Assembly (NCBI GenBank): GCA_038496445.1
Contig: JALMLS010000150.1
Span: forward strand, 62,001-126,000
From: Trichosphaerium sp. ATCC 40318
Lineage: Eukaryota > Protista > Tubulinea
Direction: 5' to 3'
DNA length: 64,000 bases
In this document: positions 5,080 through 40,378 of the stretch, in pieces
Position numbering within the stretch: the stretch's first letter is position 1
Layout of the letters: every line of letters starts with the position of its first letter
Notes under the pieces: generated by a model
Told to the model about the DNA's origin: nothing
Database searches by the model: none
The model's input: only the letters and a program-made list of their open reading frames with translations
Made by a program: the position numbers and the translations under genes

Positions 5080-6487
5080 TTATACTGGTGGATCAGTTGG
5101 TGGTGCAAATGGCTCATTTGTTGGTGGATGAGTTGGAGCTGCTGTTGGATATGCTGTTGGATTCGCTGTTGGTGGATGAGTTGGCGGAGCAAATGGCTCA
5201 TATGTTGGTGGATGAGTTGGCGTTGCTGTTGGATATGCTGTTGGCTCATATGTTGGTGGATGAGTTGGCGGAGCAAATGGCTCATTTGTTGGTGGATGAG
5301 TTGGCGTTGCTGTTGGATATGCTGTTGGCTCATATGTTGGTGGATGAGTTGGCGGAGCAAATGGCTCATATGTTGGTGGATGAGTTGGGGCTGCTGTTGG
5401 ATATGCTGTTGGATTCGCTGTTGGTGGATGAGTTGGCGGAGCAAATGGCTCATTTGTTGGTGGATGAGTTGGCGTTGCTGTTGGATATGCTGTTGGCTCA
5501 TATGTTGGTGGATGAGTTGGAGCTGCTGTTGGATATGCTGTTGGATTCATTGTTGGTGGATGAGTTGGGGCTGCTGTTGGATATGCTGTTGGCTCATATG
5601 TTGGTGGATGAGTTGGCGGAGCAAATGGCTCATTTGTTGGTGGATGAGTTGGCGTTGCTGTTGGATATGCTGTTGGCTCATATGTTGGTGGATGAGTTGG
5701 AGCTGCTGTTGGATATGCTGTTGGATTCGCTGTTGGTGGATGAGTTGGCGGAGCAAATGGCTCATATGTTGGTGGATGAGTTGGGGCTGCTGTTGGATAT
5801 GCTGTTGGATTCGTTGTTGGTGGATGAGTTGGAGTTGCTGTTGGATATGCTGTTGGCTCATATGTTGGTGGATGAGTTGGCGGAGCAAATGGCTCATTTG
5901 TTGGTGGATGAGTTGGCGTTGCTGTTGGATATGCTGTTGGCTCGTATGTTGGCAGAGGATCATTACAAATACCACGTCTTCTAAGAGAAGGTTCGGCACA
6001 TCTCTCTGTCGCCCATTGACCTGCTGGTCTGAAACTTGTAGAGCTCGAAATACTATTACAGTCTCTTACAGCAGCGTTGTTGTTGTTTGAAGCAAAATTG
6101 GTGTATGTGAATGGCGTTCCATCTCTCCAAGTGTAAGTACCTATTTTGTTGTAAGAAATAATGTAAAGAAAACAAATAAAGTATGTGTACCTTCGTTTGC
6201 GGCATCAGTACCGCCTATCCAACATAATAAATATCCAGTTGTATCACATGCTGCTACGACAGCTGCGTTCTCAGTGGCATCTGTAATTTTAGCAAGGTCA
6301 GATCCATACATCGACTGACAAGCTAGCTGAGCATCTTCTGCTGTCAGATCGTTTGGTAAAGCAATATAGGCATGTACAACGCCAAATAGCAGTGTTATGT
6401 GAAGCATCTAATAGAGTATTAGCAAAAAAAGAGGTTGTGGTTGTGGCGAAAGAAAGTGACTCCAAAACAAAGAGCTTAACGTACCAT
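5080..6487 (-). CDS. Secreted C-type lectin domain protein with long Pro/Thr-rich repeat tail (paralog 1)
   Basis: ATG-only exon at 6485-6487; signal peptide [14 protein letters not shown]; CTL motifs [35 protein letters not shown]; tail of PTHPPT(Y/N)EP(T/F)A repeats ending PPTDPPV*. Confidence 0.85.
5083..5952 (-). repeat. Coding minisatellite ([15 protein letters not shown] / [12 protein letters not shown] units)
   Basis: Tandem gttggtggatgagttgg-containing units of ~36-48 bp. Confidence 0.9.
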
Positions 6488-10961: not shown

Positions 10962-11538
10962 AGTTATATCTATCATGTTGTATAAAGGTTTTTTGATGAG
11001 TTGCTTTGTATCTTGTTGGAGTTAAAAGTTATCTCGTTCTTGCCACCTTGATTTTTCTCTGAAAAAGACTTTTGGATGATGATAAAAATCACGAAATCTC
11101 TCGTAACACGTGTTATCTCTAATATTTACTTTAGTACACGGAACTGAACATATCGAGTACATAGGCAGTCTCAACCCATCACCGTTCACTTATCTGCTGT
11201 TCTTTACCTCGTACATATTCATACTACTCATGGTTGTGCTATTTTTGTTAGCGTACAAGAGTCACATAGTAGGGTTGTTTTGCAAAATTGGTAGCTGTTG
11301 CTTTGATAGTCACTAAAAAATTGGTACCATGTGTAGTCACATATCATATTACCACAACAAGATCCACAGTCTTTTCTATTGTTAAACGTTTCAAAGTCTG
11401 ACTCATATCACAATACAAACATCTGACGCTTGACATCTTTTACCCTCAAACGTAATTCACATGAATTGCTCAAGTTAAACAAAAATAGAAGTATACAGTT
11501 AAAATGTACTTTATTGGGTTACAGAATTAAATATGCAA

Positions 11539-13149
11539 TTATACTGGTGGATCAGTTGGTGGTGCAAATGGCTCATTTGTTGGTGGTTGAGTTGGAGATG
11601 GAAATGGAGCGTTTGTTGGTTGTGAAAATGGAGGATAAGATGGCGGAACTGATGGTGGTGCAAATGGTGGATAAGATGGGGGAGCCGTTGGTGGTGCAAA
11701 TGGAGGATAAGATGGCGGAACTGATGGTGGTGCAAATGGTGGATAAGATGGGGGAACTGATGGCGGTGCAAATGGTGGACTTGTTGGTGGTTGAGTTGGA
11801 GCTGCCGTTGGCGGTGCAAATGGTGGATAAGATGGCGGAACTGATGGTGGTGCAAATGGTGGATAAGATGGGGGAGCCGTTGGTGGTGCAAATGGAGGAT
11901 AAGATGGCGGAACTGATGGTGGTGCAAATGGAGGACTTGTTGGTGGTTGAGTTGGAGCTGCCGTTGGCGGTGCAAATGGTGGATAAGATGGCGGAACTGA
12001 TGGTGGTGCAAATGGAGGATAAGATGGCGGCGCTGTTGGTGGTGCAAATGGAGGATAAGATGGCGGAACTGATGGTGGTGCAAATGGTGGATAAGACGGG
12101 GGAGCTGTTGGTGGTGCAAATGGTGGATAAGATGGCGGTGATGTTGGTGGTGCAAATGGAGGACTTGTTGGTGGTTGAGTTGGAGCTGCTGTTGGATTTG
12201 CTGTTGGAGCTACAACTGGAGCTACACAAATACCATATCTTTTGAGAGAAGGTTCAGCACATCTCTCTGTTCCCCATGTGCCTGCTGGTCTGAAACTGTA
12301 GGTACCTGAGATACTGTTACAGTCTCTTACAGCAGCGTTGTTGTTATTTGAAGCGAAATTGGTGTATGTGAATGATGAACCATCTCTCCACACATAAGTT
12401 CCTACAACGATGATAAGGACTCAGAACTACAAGAAAATAGTTGTTACCTTCAACTGCAATGTCGTTTCCACCAATCCAGCATAATGCCAGCCTTTGTGTA
12501 TCACATGCGGCTACCGCTCTTGTGTTTTCTTGTACTGTTGTGATTTTGGCGAGATCTGTACCATAAATACTTTGGCAAGCCAATTGAGCATCGTTTGCTG
12601 TCAATCTCTCTGACAATAGAACATAATCAACTGGAGGATCATTGCAAATACCACGTCTTCTAAGAGAAGGTTCAGCACATCTCTCTGTCGCCCATTGACC
12701 TGCTGAGCTCGAAATACTATTACAGTCTCTTACAGCAGCGTTGTTGTTGTTTGAAGCAAAATTGGTGTATGTGAATGGCGTTCCATCTCTCCAAGTGTAA
12801 GTACCTATTTTGTTGTAAGAAATAATGTAAAGAAAACAAAAGTATGTGTACCTTCGTTTGCGGCATCAGTACCACCTATCCAACATAATAAATCTCCAGT
12901 TGTATCACATGCTGCTACGACAGCTGCGTTCTCAGTGGCATCTGTAATTTTAGCAAGGTCAGATCCATACATCGACTGACAAGCTAGCTGAGCATCTTCT
13001 GCTGTCAGATCGTTTGGTAAAGCAATGTAGGCATGTACAACGCCAAAGAGCAATGTTATGTGGAGTATCTAGTCACGGTATTAGCAAAAAAAGAGGTTGT
13101 GGTTGTGGCGAAAGAAAGTGACTCCAAAACAAAGAGCTTAACATACCAT
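11539..13149 (-). CDS. Secreted protein with two C-type lectin domains and extensin-like PPSYPPFAPP repeats (paralog 3)
   Basis: ATG-only exon 13147-13149; signal peptide; CTL-A (15-bp in-frame deletion vs paralog 1) + CTL-B (CWIGGND, WRDG, WGTERC); Pro-rich tail ending [12 protein letters not shown]. Confidence 0.85.
11545..12215 (-). repeat. Coding minisatellite (PPS(V)PPSYPPFAPP units, 39-bp period)
   Basis: Tandem ggtgcaaatgg(a/t)ggataagatgg units. Confidence 0.9.
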
Positions 13150-17102: not shown

Positions 17103-17539
17103 ATCACGTGCGTATGGAAAAGTATTCGTATGTTTCTTTTTTTTGAAAACGACTTAAGCTGTTGTTCTTCGTACCTTAAGCAGGGGAGTTTGCTTGTAGT
17201 GTAGTATTGATTGTACGAGTTTAAACGGTGCTTTCTGCTAAATACATGCCTAAGCTGTAAGCCTAACTTCATATTCTACCTTGTTATTGTTTTCCCTGGC
17301 TTGTTTAAGTGTGAACAAAGGAATATGTAATGCAGGATTTACGTTCGTGTACTCGTAAGTGGTCGTGTATGGATCCTTAATAGCATCATTTATACCGCTA
17401 AACAAATTGCCGTTTATGCAAATACAAAACTGTTTGTGAATGTCTATGGTTGTATATTAACGATACAAAGATGCAAAGTAAATTGCGGTTTTTATTGAAG
17501 TGTGAAGGGGAGGCAAATGAGTGCCTACAAATTACAAAG

Positions 17540-18148
17540 TCATTCTTGACCTTGTTTTGGTTTCATGGAGGGAAATGATGAATGTCTCTTTCCACCGTTA
17601 CGACATCTTTGAAGACAGAAATCGAGATGAGCATTACATACATGAGGTGGATTGAATTCGCGACAATCTGATTGAGCGATGTGGCAGTTCACAGGGCATG
17701 AGAACTGCTCTGTTGATTCAGTATTTTGAACACTACGTTTTCCGCCATTGCGACATCTTCGGAGACAAAAGTCGGCTTCGGCGTTACATATGTGAGGCGG
17801 ATTGAATTCACTGCAGTCTGATTGGGCAATATGACAGTTGACTGCACATGAGAACTGTTCTGATGATTCGATGTTTCGTTTTCCTCCATTTCTACATCTT
17901 TGAAGACATAAATCGACTTGAGTGTTACACACATGAGGTGGATTGAATTCACGACAATCTCCTTGAGCGATGTAACAGTTGACAGGGCATGAGAACTGCT
18001 CTATCGACTCAGTCTGTGATAAAAAGAGTCAGTATGAGGAATGAATCAAAAAGTATGAGATAACGATATTACTAAAAAGACAACGTACAAGACATAGAAT
18101 CATGGAAAGAGATGCAATGATGACAATGAAAGTAGAGAAAAGATGCAT
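17540..18148 (-). CDS. Multi-repeat Cys-rich peptide precursor A (signal peptide + 3 x 6-Cys peptide-GKR), 177 aa
   Basis: Exon 1 18148-18089 MHLFSTFIVIIASLSMILCL; intron 18088-18014; exon 2 18013-17540 with three QFSC..NC.IAQ.DC.EFNPPH.CN...D.CL.RCRNG-GKR units. Confidence 0.9.
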
Positions 18149-18772
18149 TGATGTTGTTGCTGTTGTTGTTGTGGTTGTTGTTGTTGAGACAATTTGATTT
18201 GATTGGTGGTGAAGATTTGAGTGGAAAACCAAGCTCGTCAAAAAACTAAGCAAATCGTCAATCATTGCGTCACTTTGTGAATAAAAACCGAAAAGCCGGA
18301 CTGTCACCATCTCTTTCCCACATGCTTTCATGAGTATTTTTGTTGCTTTAAAACCCTTCAAGCATCAACCAAGTACATTGGCGGAACTTTTTTACGCCGA
18401 CTTCCTTGGTGAACTAAATAATTCAAACACAACATATTATTGGCGTTAGCTATTTCATAAAACATTTGTTCGGCAATAATCTACGCGTTAAAAAACTCTC
18501 CGTGATTTTAGCAAACACCCATTTTCGAACCAAGTAACTTCAGCAGTTGCTTATAAAACAGGCGTAACTGACACCTTTGACATCGTGTGAGGTCATGTTA
18601 TCAAATATCGCGTGATTTTTTTTCAGTGTACCACGTGAAATTTTGTTTTTGTTCACGTGAATCTAAACGGTACAAAAATATTCCGATGTTGACGAGATTT
18701 TATTTTGGTAAAGACTGAATCAATCAAATTGCCTCAACAACAACAACCTCAACAACAACAGCAACAACATCA

Positions 18773-19382
18773 ATGCATCTGTTCTCTACTTTCATTGTCA
18801 TCATTGCATCTCTTTCCATGATTCTATGTCTTGTACGTTGTCTTTTTAGTAATAGTTGTTATCTCATACTTTTTGATTCATTCCTCATACTGACTCTTTT
18901 TATCACAGACTGAGTCGATAGAGCAGTTCTCATGCCCTGTAAACTGTTATATCGCTCGATCAGATTGTCGTGAATTCAATCCACCTCATGTGTGTAATGC
19001 TCAAGTTGATTTATGTCTTCAAAGATGTAGAAATGGAGGAAAACGAAACATCGAATCATCAGAACAATTCTCATGTGCAGTCAATTGTCATATTGCCCAA
19101 TCAGACTGCAGTGAGTTCAATCCGCCTCATATATGTAACGCTGAAGCCGACTTTTGTCTCCGAAGATGTCGCAATGGCGGAAAACGTAGTGTTCAAAATG
19201 CTGAATCAACAGAACAATTCTCATGCCCTGTAAACTGCCACATCGCTCAATCAGATTGTCGTGAATTCAATCCACCTCATGTATGTAATGCTCATCTTGA
19301 TTTCTGTCTTCAGAGATGCCGTACCAGTGGAAAGAGACATTCATCACTTCCCTCCATGAAACCAAAACAAGGTCAAGAATGA
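18773..19382 (+). CDS. Multi-repeat Cys-rich peptide precursor B (inverted paralog of A), 177 aa
   Basis: Exon 1 18773-18832; intron 18833-18908; exon 2 18909-19382; three 6-Cys units ending RNG-GKR, RNG-GKR, RTS-GKR. Confidence 0.9.
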
Positions 19383-19640
19383 CTTTGTACTTTGTAGGCA
19401 CTCATTTGCCTCCCTTCACACTTCAAATAAAAAACGCAATTTACTTGGCACATTTGTGTTGTTAATATACAACCGTGATGGCCTTCTATGCATCACTTTG
19501 TCATAAGACGTTTAAAAACACAGCTGGGTGATTCTTCTTTTGCGTATTGCAACCAATTAAGTTCCAAAACAGTTTCGAACGAAATTAAGCGAAAAGATTG
19601 TTTTCTTTGAAACTGCCTTAGCAAGAACAACAATCTAAAC

Positions 19641-21388
19641 ATGGAGCACTTAGCGGTAGAAAATAGAGCTCTAGACACCAGCGGATTTGCAAAGGAGCTA
19701 GCAGATGTATCAACACAGGAGTTAAAAGAGATAACAGCAGAATGGAACGTAATTACACAGTTGCCACCGGAACTCGCCAAATTCAAGTCCTTGCATACTC
19801 TCAGCGCGTATTGCAACCAAATAGAGACATTGCCACAGTTCTTATTCTCAATGAAAGCCCTGGCGCGTATTTTTCTCTCAAAGTACGTATACTTGCTATT
19901 AATATGTTCTCAATACGCTAGAAATAACATCAAACATGTACCAGAGGAAATTGGGTTGTTAACGAACTTAGAAGAGTTAAATTTGTCCGTAAATCAGATA
20001 TCTGAACTGCCAGCGTCAATGTCAGACTTGAAAAAACTACGAATACTTACTCTCACTAAAAATAACTTCGAAAAAATTCCTGAAGTTGTGTTCGAAATTA
20101 CTTCCCTAGCAGAGCTTGAAATAAACGCCAATGCAATCAAAGTTATTCCAGATACTATATTACAGCTATCAAACTTAACTGCACTATCTGTGGCGCAAAC
20201 TGAGCTCCATAGTTTGCCTGAAGCTTTAGGAACTTTAAGCAAACTTAAAGTGTTTGATGCTCATCTTAATTACATTAACACTCTTCCGGAATCGTTTGTG
20301 AAGCTTCAATGCCTACAAGATGTGAAGCTGCAGTACGTAACAAGTGATTTTGAAAGTGTAGTTTAGTGTATTAGTTAACTTAAGCACAGATCGAATGACT
20401 TGTCTACCTTTCCTAAAGCATTACAGTCTTTGCCTCTTTTGAATAGTCTGAGTATTGGCAATAATCCAGTATCGTTTAAAGAAGAGGTAAGAACCATACT
20501 CAAGGTGATATGTAACATCAAAAAAGGCAACAGCGATGACAACATCTAAGCCAACTATGTTTATATTCTACAATGATGATATAGTTGATGAGATAGTGCC
20601 TGGTAGGTGTTACGTTCTACAATCTCATTTTGTTTATTTCTCTTTTATCTGATTGTGTACAGGACTGTATTTGGGTTCCCTTGATGGCTCTGCAAATAGG
20701 CATTTTCTTACAGGAAAAGTTAAGAATGTATTGAGCGCATTAAATATCAACTTTATCAAACCGTATTATCCTGACTTGTTCACGTACACGCTGATAGATG
20801 CCAATGATACAGGTATGAGAAAAGCACTTTTACATGTACAACAACACTAAGTACTTCATTAGATGCCCAGGATTTAATTAGCTTATTTGAAGATACATAT
20901 GCAATGATAGAAAAAGGCATTAATGATGGAGGTATACTTGTACATTGTCAAGCAGGGTGAGTTTCAGTCATAAGCTTATTATCATGTGATTTTCTTCTTT
21001 TTTTCTTCTTTTGTTGGCGGTTGTAGCTTATCGTGTTTGTTAAAGACGATCGAGGAGTGCAACACTTGTAGCTGCTTACTTGATGAAGAAAATGAATAAA
21101 ACTCCTGATGAAGCGCTAGATTTTATTACAGAGAGACGACCAATCGTGTGTACGTTTCTGCATATTTTTTTTAATAGCAACAGACATTGATCATCTGAAT
21201 TTAGGTCCTAACAATGGATTTCGTTCGCAGTTACGAAAGTACGCTGTTGTATTGTTTGTTTATTTCTCACTTTGTTTAGATATGGTCGTGAGGTGTTGGG
21301 CATGGAGATTAGTGAACCACCACCGCCTATTAGATACAACCAACCTAAGCCTGAACCAGTTCAAGAAAGACGTTGCACTATTTGCTGA
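19641..21388 (+). CDS. Leucine-rich repeat dual-specificity (MAPK) phosphatase, Dictyostelium Mpl-like
   Basis: N-terminal LRRs; DSP domain GLYLGS, ILVHCQAGRSRSATLVAAYLM, CPNNGFRSQLRKY; C-terminus ...RRCTIC*. Confidence 0.88.
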
Positions 21389-39460: not shown

Positions 39461-40378
39461 TTAAAAATAAAGTGGACGTGTATCTTTTTTAGCCAAATAG
39501 TCATTGATGTGTAAGGCCCTACCCCAGGTTATACCTAATTCCTCAGCTGCTGCTTCTGTTATTTGTGTATGTTTTCCGAATACATATTTATCATCGATTG
39601 TAATGCTTCTAAGAGACTTCAAGTGTTTCAAACAAGAGTTCGTAATTTTAATACAACTATCAAGTTTCAGGTGTTCAAGATTTGTCAGGTGCATCAAACC
39701 TGAGTCTGTGACCATGTCACATTCCCTTATAAGAAGCTTTTTGACATTAGTCAGCAATCTGACACCATCATCTGTCATCATCCTTGGGTCTTGAGGTATT
39801 ATATGAACTGAGTGTACACTCACAAGTTGTTTTAGCAGTTCTTCTTTTGGCTCAGAAAATGTAATTTGGTGGACGTTCTTTAGTTCACGTATCCCATCAA
39901 CAGTAATGTTCTCACAATAGCGGATATCAATTGTATGTACGTATTTGAGTGCCTTCAACGAAATATCTGTTATAGGCGCAGACATCAAGCAAATGTTGTG
40001 AAGGCTACTTTTATCTAGCAATTGTATATCCTTATCCGTAGTATTTGTAGGTAGAATTATAGACTGAACACCAGATAGACACTCCAAGTCCCTCTTTGAT
40101 AGTTTACGTATTTCAGATAGAAAGATAAGGAAACAATTGATTGTGGTGTTTTTAAGCAATGGACTTCCTTTTATAAATGAAAAATCTGAAGGTTTTTCTA
40201 ATGTGATTCTATCAAAGCCAATATTATTGCGAATGATATTGTTGAACACGTGGGAAACTGTGGTAGCCCTTATACGCTCTTTCTTTTCCAGGTAGCTTAA
40301 AATATGTGTTAACGTCTCTGGTGGGAGCGTTCTAAGCAAATAAACATGTTTTTCTGGCTTCCGACATTCTTGCGACAT
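39461..40378 (-). CDS. F-box/LRR protein (intronless)
   Basis: LRTLPPETLTHILSYLEKKERIRATTVSHVFN F-box; AMN1-type LRRs (ITDISL, ITVDGI, VTDSGL, ITNSCL). Confidence 0.85.
   Translation of the reverse strand: MSQECRKPEKHVYLLRTLPPETLTHILSYLEKKERIRATTVSHVFNNIIRNNIGFDRITLEKPSDFSFIKGSPLLKNTTINCFLIFLSEIRKLSKRDLECLSGVQSIILPTNTTDKDIQLLDKSSLHNICLMSAPITDISLKALKYVHTIDIRYCENITVDGIRELKNVHQITFSEPKEELLKQLVSVHSVHIIPQDPRMMTDDGVRLLTNVKKLLIRECDMVTDSGLMHLTNLEHLKLDSCIKITNSCLKHLKSLRSITIDDKYVFGKHTQITEAAAEELGITWGRALHINDYLAKKDTRPLYF

Follow-up and report, generated by a model that had tools for sequence, protein, structure and literature searches.

Organization of the locus

The DNA considered here, referred to as the window, is a stretch of 64,000 nucleotides from Trichosphaerium sp. 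ATCC 40318, corresponding to positions 62001-126000 of contig C138 in a 70-Mb assembly. The interval 17540-19382 of the window contains two head-to-head genes of two exons each, which are 96% identical. They are probably lineage-restricted genes for secreted polyprotein precursors, each of which would be cut at Lys-Arg (K-R) sites into three six-cysteine helical-hairpin peptides. Gene A is the minus-strand mirror image of gene B, as judged from the translation. The arms of this inverted repeat are 96-98% complementary and span 17448 to 19474, and a central stretch of 624 bp separates the two ATG codons.

Exon 1 of gene B encodes MHLFSTFIVIIASLSMILCL, and exon 2 encodes, in order, TESIE, a 38-mer, GKR, NIESSE, a second 38-mer, GKR, SVQNAESTE, a third 38-mer, GKR, and a tail of 14 residues, HSSLPSMKPKQGQE, followed by the stop codon. 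The predicted prepropeptide is 177 amino acids (aa) long, and its first 20 aa form a putative signal peptide on an exon of its own. A preliminary description of this DNA, made from the sequence alone, had proposed a signal peptide plus three units per gene, each consisting of an acidic spacer (TESIE, NIESSE or SVQN(T/A)ESTE), a Gln-started 38-mer and GKR, and the translation confirms this layout. The product of ~157 aa given there corresponds to exon 2 alone.

The gene family within the genome

A second intact head-to-head pair lies on the same contig at C138:50978-52614, and a third, damaged cassette lies on it at about 21.6-23.4 kb. In the damaged cassette, one gene has two units and its signal-peptide exon is displaced by an insertion of ~0.9 kb, while the partner gene is cut down to its last unit (C138:23116-23286). 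The insertion, at C138:22000-22893, lies within the two-unit paralogue's intron and carries a hAT-transposase-like C-terminal fragment (...ATVERVFSRGS...). The intact members of the family amount to four genes with twelve units, and all four genes have an identical signal peptide and conserved splice sites.

Three near-identical relic fragments of the last half-unit are present on other contigs (C362:9864-9959, C208:94849-94944 and C455:8956-9051; …VCNAHLDFCLQGCRNGGKG…). They have GKG in place of GKR, and their N-terminal half is missing. The flanks of the relics are identical on the three contigs, and the relic is probably carried along by a dispersed repeat. When the genome of the organism was searched with a profile, no more divergent members came to light. 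A large segmental duplication was considered as the source of the three cassettes and rejected, since only the cassettes of ~1.8-2.0 kb are common to C138 at 21.6, 50.9 and 79.4 kb and the ~29 kb between them is not duplicated. As regards a foldback or terminal-inverted-repeat transposon origin of the cassette, no target-site duplications are visible at its borders.

Framework and conservation of the peptide units

Each unit is a 38-mer that starts with Gln and has its six cysteines in the palindromic arrangement C-x3-C-x6-C-x8-C-x6-C-x3-C. The six units of the window encode five distinct 38-mers, because unit 2 of gene A (A2) equals unit 2 of gene B (B2), and the number of peptides given in the preliminary description is thus borne out. 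Genome-wide, 14 intact units were aligned over 41 columns each (the 38-mer plus three residues), and 25 of the 41 columns are invariant. The residues common to all 14 units include Gln1, the six cysteines, the loop E-F-N-P-P-H, Arg36, which stands at P6 of the K-R site, and Lys40-Arg41 (14/14).

The most variable part of the unit is formed by the last three residues ahead of K-R (N/T, G/S, G/V), and the first residues after K-R also vary between units. The codons of the K-R pair itself differ from unit to unit, with AAA or AAG for Lys and CGA, CGT or AGA for Arg; the conservation of K-R is therefore selected and not a matter of inherited identity. Gly39, which completes the G-K-R motif, is kept in 12 of the 14 units, and it is replaced by Val (RNG-V-KR) in the second unit of each gene of the second pair, outside the window. 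Its conservation is less informative, because the six units of the window all use one and the same codon for it, GGA. The Gly before K-R had been described as retained despite changes in the preceding residues; this holds within the window, where RNG-GKR stands against RTS-GKR, and fails in the two V-K-R units of the second pair.

The last four residues of the spacer, E-S-x-E, are conserved in all unit types, so the spacer is either a recognition element or a portion of the mature peptide. The core peptides are near neutral, with isoelectric points of 6.0-7.8 and net charges of -1 to +1.

Selection and transcription

Comparison of the four three-unit paralogues gives a whole-gene ratio of nonsynonymous to synonymous divergence (dN/dS) of 0.10-0.17, with dS of 0.08-0.31. 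When the three unit types within a single gene are compared with one another, dN is 0.09-0.15, while synonymous change has reached saturation, with dS running from 0.65 to values that could not be computed. The conservation of the units is far above chance expectation, and selection is purifying, not diversifying. The word "library", applied to these peptides in the preliminary description, overstates their diversity, given this mode of selection.

Contigs from the public run X2 span only the exons and the untranslated regions (UTRs) of both genes; the intron, the intergenic stretch 18039-18677 and the left flank are not covered by them. One of these contigs bears the joint 18832->18909, and the intron that it lacks (GT..AG) is precisely the one predicted for gene B. 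Several X2 contigs match with zero differences, and X2 is therefore read as a transcriptome of the same organism. Another run, X1, gives no word on expression because it matches the unspliced two-unit paralogue. These observations support the view that the genes are real, transcribed and spliced, and that they encode putative secretory multi-unit precursors.

Predicted fold of the unit

The AlphaFold2 model of the unit, built with the 14-unit alignment, has two helices, 4-18 and 21-38, with the invariant NPPH turn between them, and its best mean predicted local distance difference test score (pLDDT) is 84.4. Cysteines 4, 8 and 15 (i, i+4, i+11) lie on one helical face, and cysteines 24, 31 and 35 (i, i+7, i+11) lie on one face of the other helix. 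The ladder C4-C35, C8-C31, C15-C24 would therefore be the natural disulfide pairing, and it is this pairing that we infer from the palindromic spacing.

Shape searches with Foldseek against the PDB, VIA-align wide and the ESM Atlas returned generic helical hairpins only, and no family was identified by them. The small structural matches include the walnut vicilin-buried peptide 9q1l_F (Z 5.2, root-mean-square deviation 1.7 over 38 residues), which is tied with generic hairpins. An identity as a mitochondrial twin-CX3C protein was rejected, as it does not agree with the signal-peptide exon or with the K-R repeats.

Processing of the precursor

In the proposed mechanism, the 20-aa signal peptide, encoded by an exon of its own, would bring the 177-aa chain into the endoplasmic reticulum. 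Each 38-aa unit would adopt the predicted helix-loop-helix, pinned by three rung-like disulfides if the pairing is as proposed. A kexin/furin-type convertase would cleave after the invariant K-R, and a carboxypeptidase would remove the K-R. Each precursor would thus yield three hairpins, near neutral in charge and with masses of about 4.3-5.4 kDa.

Enzyme genes suited to these steps are present in the genome. Convertases of the kexin/furin type are indicated by P-domain (P_proprotein) matches at four loci. At one of these, L015, neighbouring exons have the hallmarks ...SWGPNDDGKT..., ...VWASGNG... and ...GTSTSAPLAA..., and its PDB matches are to kexin and furin only. The K-R at P2-P1 together with the Arg at P6 fits the proprotein-convertase motif. 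M14 carboxypeptidases are numerous. The preliminary description had taken G-K-R as a combined signal for a convertase, a carboxypeptidase and PAM; its convertase step is well founded and its carboxypeptidase step has candidate enzymes, whereas a canonical PAM was not found, as set out in the next section.

Several points weigh against the reading of these genes as precursors of three separate hairpin peptides. The five unit models range in pLDDT from 50 to 84, and three of the five lie at 50-71. For the precursor as a whole, AlphaFold gives a poor model (pLDDT 42.7), with the lowest confidence at the spacers. Cleavage, disulfide pairing and secretion are all deduced rather than observed, and the function is a guess that is not informed by a homologue, a neighbour or an expression condition. 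Moreover, run X2 is of unrecorded type, and its RNA nature follows solely from the coverage pattern.

An uncut secreted protein of 157 aa, in which three tandem hairpin domains are held on flexible acidic linkers for a role in matrix, adhesion or binding and K-R is mere linker, is unlikely. Tandem small disulfide domains are common among extracellular proteins, and the conservation of ES-x-E in each spacer means that the spacers are not free to drift, which would suit such a protein, as would the indirect nature of the case for cleavage. On the other hand, K-R is kept in all 14 units, whereas the three residues ahead of it and the first ones following it vary, and the invariant P6 Arg suits a convertase of the type that the genome encodes. 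The two-unit gene of the third cassette also stands against an uncut protein, since it indicates that the number of units can vary, which is what a polyprotein would lead one to expect.

Modification of the peptide ends

The preliminary description went further and proposed an animal-neuropeptide-like route, in which the spacers are taken off by a cut between Glu and Gln (Glu|Gln), Gln1 becomes pyroglutamate (pyroGlu) and Gly39 is converted to a C-terminal amide by a PAM-type enzyme. As a whole, this model is rather improbable. It is favoured by the fact that, between unit types with saturated synonymous sites, Gln1 has been kept in all 14 units and Gly39 in 12 of them. It is also favoured by the presence of glutaminyl cyclases of the plant/bacterial type (PF05096), which score well over threshold at four loci (C196:52510-53325, C12:14660-15821, C271:22966-23380 and C25:259882-261063). 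However, the pyroGlu step requires the Glu|Gln cut, and we know of no secretory protease that makes such a cut; for this reason the step is pure inference. The spacer lengths of 5, 6 and 9 residues do not fit stepwise trimming by a dipeptidyl peptidase either.

For the amide, the PHM/DBH superfamily of copper monooxygenases (PF01082/PF03712) is present and greatly expanded, with at least 19 loci, a strikingly large number for a protist. These loci, L025-L043, lie on C12, C46, C102, C3, C86, C39, C320 (three loci), C119, C205, C386, C189, C17, C191, C155, C332, C103 and C57. The copper-ligand motifs HHM and E-E-M-C are kept in most copies, which speaks for the model; in C103, where D-E-A-C is found, and in C189, ligands seem to be missing. 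A DOMON domain lies directly upstream at 12 of the loci according to Pfam, and a DOMON-like N-terminal exon (...FEVFWNVD...WVGFGE...) was seen by eye at five more (C86, C39, C103, C320:17443 and C119). Two loci are left. At C189 no DOMON is visible and two ligands of the CuM copper site are lost, as read by eye from the sequence; at C320:34243 the upstream region runs off the contig end, so that a DOMON is unreadable there. Judged from the predicted domain order, a DOMON joined to a monooxygenase is the architecture of DBH/MOXD and not that of PHM.

Other features of these proteins also stand against an animal-type amidation. PHM binds the substrate carboxylate through an Arg, which we take to be Arg240 in the numbering of the rat enzyme; the residue at this position is F, G and G at the three readable loci, C12, C46 and C119, respectively. 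A PDB search with one monooxygenase exon was a weak test of PHM against DBH (DBH at E=0.006). Of the 63 NHL matches in the genome, not one adjoins a monooxygenase locus. The two NHL loci with the best scores (C246 and C25) match NHLRC2/SOQ1 with E=1e-23 to 1e-31; the PAL structure 3fvz scored E=1.6e-4 against one of the two and was unlisted for the other. The remaining NHL loci, inspected by eye only, resemble F-box/NHL proteins or NHLRC2. A canonical PAM, that is, a PHM without DOMON together with PAL, was not found among the copper-monooxygenase and NHL loci examined in the genome, whether as a PHM-only or as a PHM-PAL gene. The replacement of Gly39 by Val in two units and the uniform GGA codon of the window units add to these difficulties. 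According to a review of PAM distribution, amoebae are without PAM (PMC6529398).

The NHL genes form a large β-propeller family in their own right, spread over many contigs (e.g. L052, L055, L056, L058 and L060). In several of them the N-terminal exon resembles an F-box (…LPPEVLHEIF…), and this suggests that the set of SCF substrate receptors has expanded.

As far as the gene content can be read, amidation would thus be without an identifiable enzyme in this genome, and the claim of an animal-neuropeptide-like amidation is not supported. Both pyroGlu and the amide are possible but conjectural modifications. That the peptides are capped with both, and that the amide is made by a DOMON-fused PHM/DBH-like monooxygenase in a PAM-independent route feeding a signalling system that arose independently of animals, is very improbable. 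Even so, G-K-R ends in a genome that is without canonical PAM but has a very large family of DOMON-copper monooxygenases sharpen the question of amidation without PAM. The computed monoisotopic masses of unit B1 are 4965.17 Da with the spacer and Gly kept and three disulfides formed, 4405.92 Da with the spacer off, Gln free and Gly kept, and 4330.89 Da for the pyroGlu/amide form.

Possible function

Purifying selection, the invariant EFNPPH loop and gene amplification together fit a dose-amplified, target-specific ligand better than a cationic membrane-active antimicrobial. The near-neutral charge likewise leans towards a specific ligand, such as a signal or pheromone, an inhibitor, or a toxin acting on a channel. 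That the peptides are secreted signals or pheromone-like factors is a serious possibility, somewhat short of an even chance, and a protease inhibitor or a toxin/defence peptide is possible to a slightly lesser degree.

With the same processing, the peptides could instead act inside the cell, being sent to phagosomes or lysosomes to kill ingested bacteria in the manner of amoebapores or naegleriapores. Naegleria is known for multi-peptide precursors of Cys-rich antimicrobial peptides, which provides a parallel for this route. Plant α-hairpinins, which are mostly antifungal or antibacterial, provide another (PMC7191063). Such a role is nevertheless quite unlikely, as the cores are near neutral and neither cationic nor amphipathic, selection is purifying rather than diversifying, and the fold is not saposin-like. 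Finally, chance open reading frames (ORFs) or decaying pseudogenes within a palindromic repeat can practically be dismissed: the cassette is indeed repeated, and the genome has a truncated copy and three relic fragments, but dN/dS is 0.1-0.17, the frames, signal-peptide exons and splice sites are undamaged in four genes, and run X2 has a spliced contig.

Hardly any secreted peptide ligands are known from free-living amoebae, and this family of four genes and twelve units under strong constraint is a testable candidate. Its processing grammar can be read straight from the sequence, and the predicted scaffold is small enough for synthesis.

Features of the cassette and its surroundings

The coordinates of the two genes and their parts within the window are collected in Table 1.

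Table 1. Parts of the two-gene cassette, in window coordinates
Feature	Position	Strand	Basis
Whole palindromic two-gene cassette	17448..19474	.	Edges of the inverted repeat and of the likeness to other cassettes
Gene A exon 2: three spacer/38-mer/GKR units, 14-aa C-terminal tail, stop	17540..18013	-	Translation, dN/dS
Unit A3	17585..17707	-	Unit alignment
Unit A2	17735..17857	-	Unit alignment
Unit A1	17876..17998	-	Unit alignment
Gene A intron, 75 nt, GTACGT...CACAG	18014..18088	-	Sequence; one X2 contig terminates at 18013 exactly
Gene A exon 1, putative signal peptide MHLFSTFIVIIASLSMILCL	18089..18148	-	Translation
Divergent intergenic region, presumed bidirectional promoter and 5' UTRs	18149..18772	.	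Sequence; X2 contig begins at 18714
Gene B exon 1 (ATG at 18773), putative signal peptide same as that of gene A	18773..18832	+	Translation
Gene B intron, 76 nt, GTACGT...CACAG	18833..18908	+	Joint 18832->18909 in X2 contig
Gene B exon 2: three units, tail, stop	18909..19382	+	Translation
Unit B1 (38-mer and GKR)	18924..19046	+	Unit alignment
Unit B2 (38-mer and GKR), protein same as A2	19065..19187	+	Unit alignment
Unit B3 (38-mer ending in RTS, and GKR)	19215..19337	+	Unit alignment

(CAA)n-rich tracts of about 35-40 nt abut each ATG, at 18149-18186 and 18735-18772, and the tract near gene B falls within the X2 contig that starts at 18714. Such a tract stands in the 5' UTR against the ATG in all four intact genes; those of the paralogues lie at C138:~51.6 kb and ~52.0 kb. 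Directly downstream of gene B is an exon for a leucine-rich repeat (LRR) protein at 19641-20366 (+), and an X2 contig leads towards it from the gene B 3' UTR. A gene with F-box and LRR lies at 39461-40378 (-), and its 'GVHTI' LRR repeats are also found on contigs C25 and C39. Two repetitive stretches of the window, 5086-5952 and 11614-12195, match themselves at shifts of ~84 nt and ~36-72 nt. They sit in the long ORFs 5128-6090 (+), 11430-12245 (+) and 11539-12393 (-), which have no Pfam match.

Search for relatives

A word-indexed search of 5.8 billion clusters found nothing, the query itself included, and Pfam gave sub-threshold noise only. An exhaustive HMMER search with the 14-unit profile against 1.84 billion protein representatives gave 0 hits at E<=0.001. 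The ESM Atlas, searched by features, gave no usable match, and a scan of metagenome contigs found no relative. Since short proteins of unannotated protist genomes are poorly represented in the libraries searched, the claim is limited to "no relative found". Within this scope, the homology searches agree with the earlier statement that no described family was recognised for the peptides, and they support an undescribed sequence family.

Comparison with known systems

Plant α-hairpinins: There is a close likeness in form to the α-hairpinins and vicilin-buried peptides, which are helix-loop-helix peptides of ~30-40 aa with ladder disulfides on a CX3C...CX3C framework; here the same fold is predicted, and the outer pairs of CX3C-Xn-CX3C are present as C4x3C8 and C31x3C35. 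In plants, the type-2 modular precursors open with a signal peptide, continue with 5-12 hairpin modules and end in a short tail (PMC7191063). Tk-AMP-X and Sm-AMP-X share with the present genes a layout in which the signal peptide is followed by several modules in a cassette and then by a short C-terminal tail; the plant precursors are cut into separate peptides, as is proposed here (PMC7191063, PMC11591084). In contrast, there is no sequence homology, with PF14861 sub-threshold in Pfam at E=0.19 and 0 hits in HMMER. The spacing of x3, x6, x8, x6, x3 also differs from that of the six-Cys class of plants, C-X3-C-X3-C-X4-20-C-X3-C-X3-C, represented by nigellin-1.1 (PDB 2NB2) (PMC11591084). Moreover, the plant peptides are freed by plant proteases, vacuolar ones among them, at sites such as Asn-Gln and not at K-R. 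The present peptides are near neutral and have a protist as host.

Small Tims and CHCH proteins: The twin CX3C/CX9C proteins of the mitochondrial intermembrane space resemble the unit as antiparallel helical hairpins with paired CX3C. They are single-copy domains without a signal peptide, have two disulfides and are imported through Mia40. In contrast, the genes described here have a hydrophobic, putatively cleavable leader on an exon of its own and three repeats delimited by K-R.

Amidated precursors: The precursors of amidated peptides in metazoans and Chlamydomonas likewise have repeats ending in G-K-R and are accompanied by convertase genes, and acidic residues stand ahead of Gln as in cnidarian precursors. 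They differ from the present case in that a canonical PAM was not found here and Val takes the place of Gly in two units.

Fungal repeat precursors: The Kex2-processed repeat proteins (KEPs) of fungi, of the yeast α-factor type, have a signal peptide and at least three near-identical cores with K-R and an acidic spacer after each, as do the present precursors (PMC6339444, PMC7329392). The presence of kexin in the genome and a copy number that differs between paralogues are further points in common. However, KEP cores are usually short linear peptides or RiPP cores (peptides made on the ribosome and modified after translation), whereas the cores here are predicted to be folded mini-domains of 38 aa with six cysteines. 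Yeast Ste13 removes X-Ala/X-Pro dipeptides, and the spacers here are off this pattern; in addition, there is no homology and the host is not a fungus.

The system is not without precedent in kind, since plant α-hairpinin modular precursors and fungal Kex2-processed repeat proteins share the same logic. Because the spacing differs, sequence similarity is absent and the cut sites are others, the family is best regarded as an independent convergent variant and a member of no described family. The family is new, and the kind of system is already known from plants and fungi. This suggests that both the combination of a signal peptide with K-R-delimited repeats and the disulfide-stapled hairpin scaffold arose again outside plants, fungi and animals.

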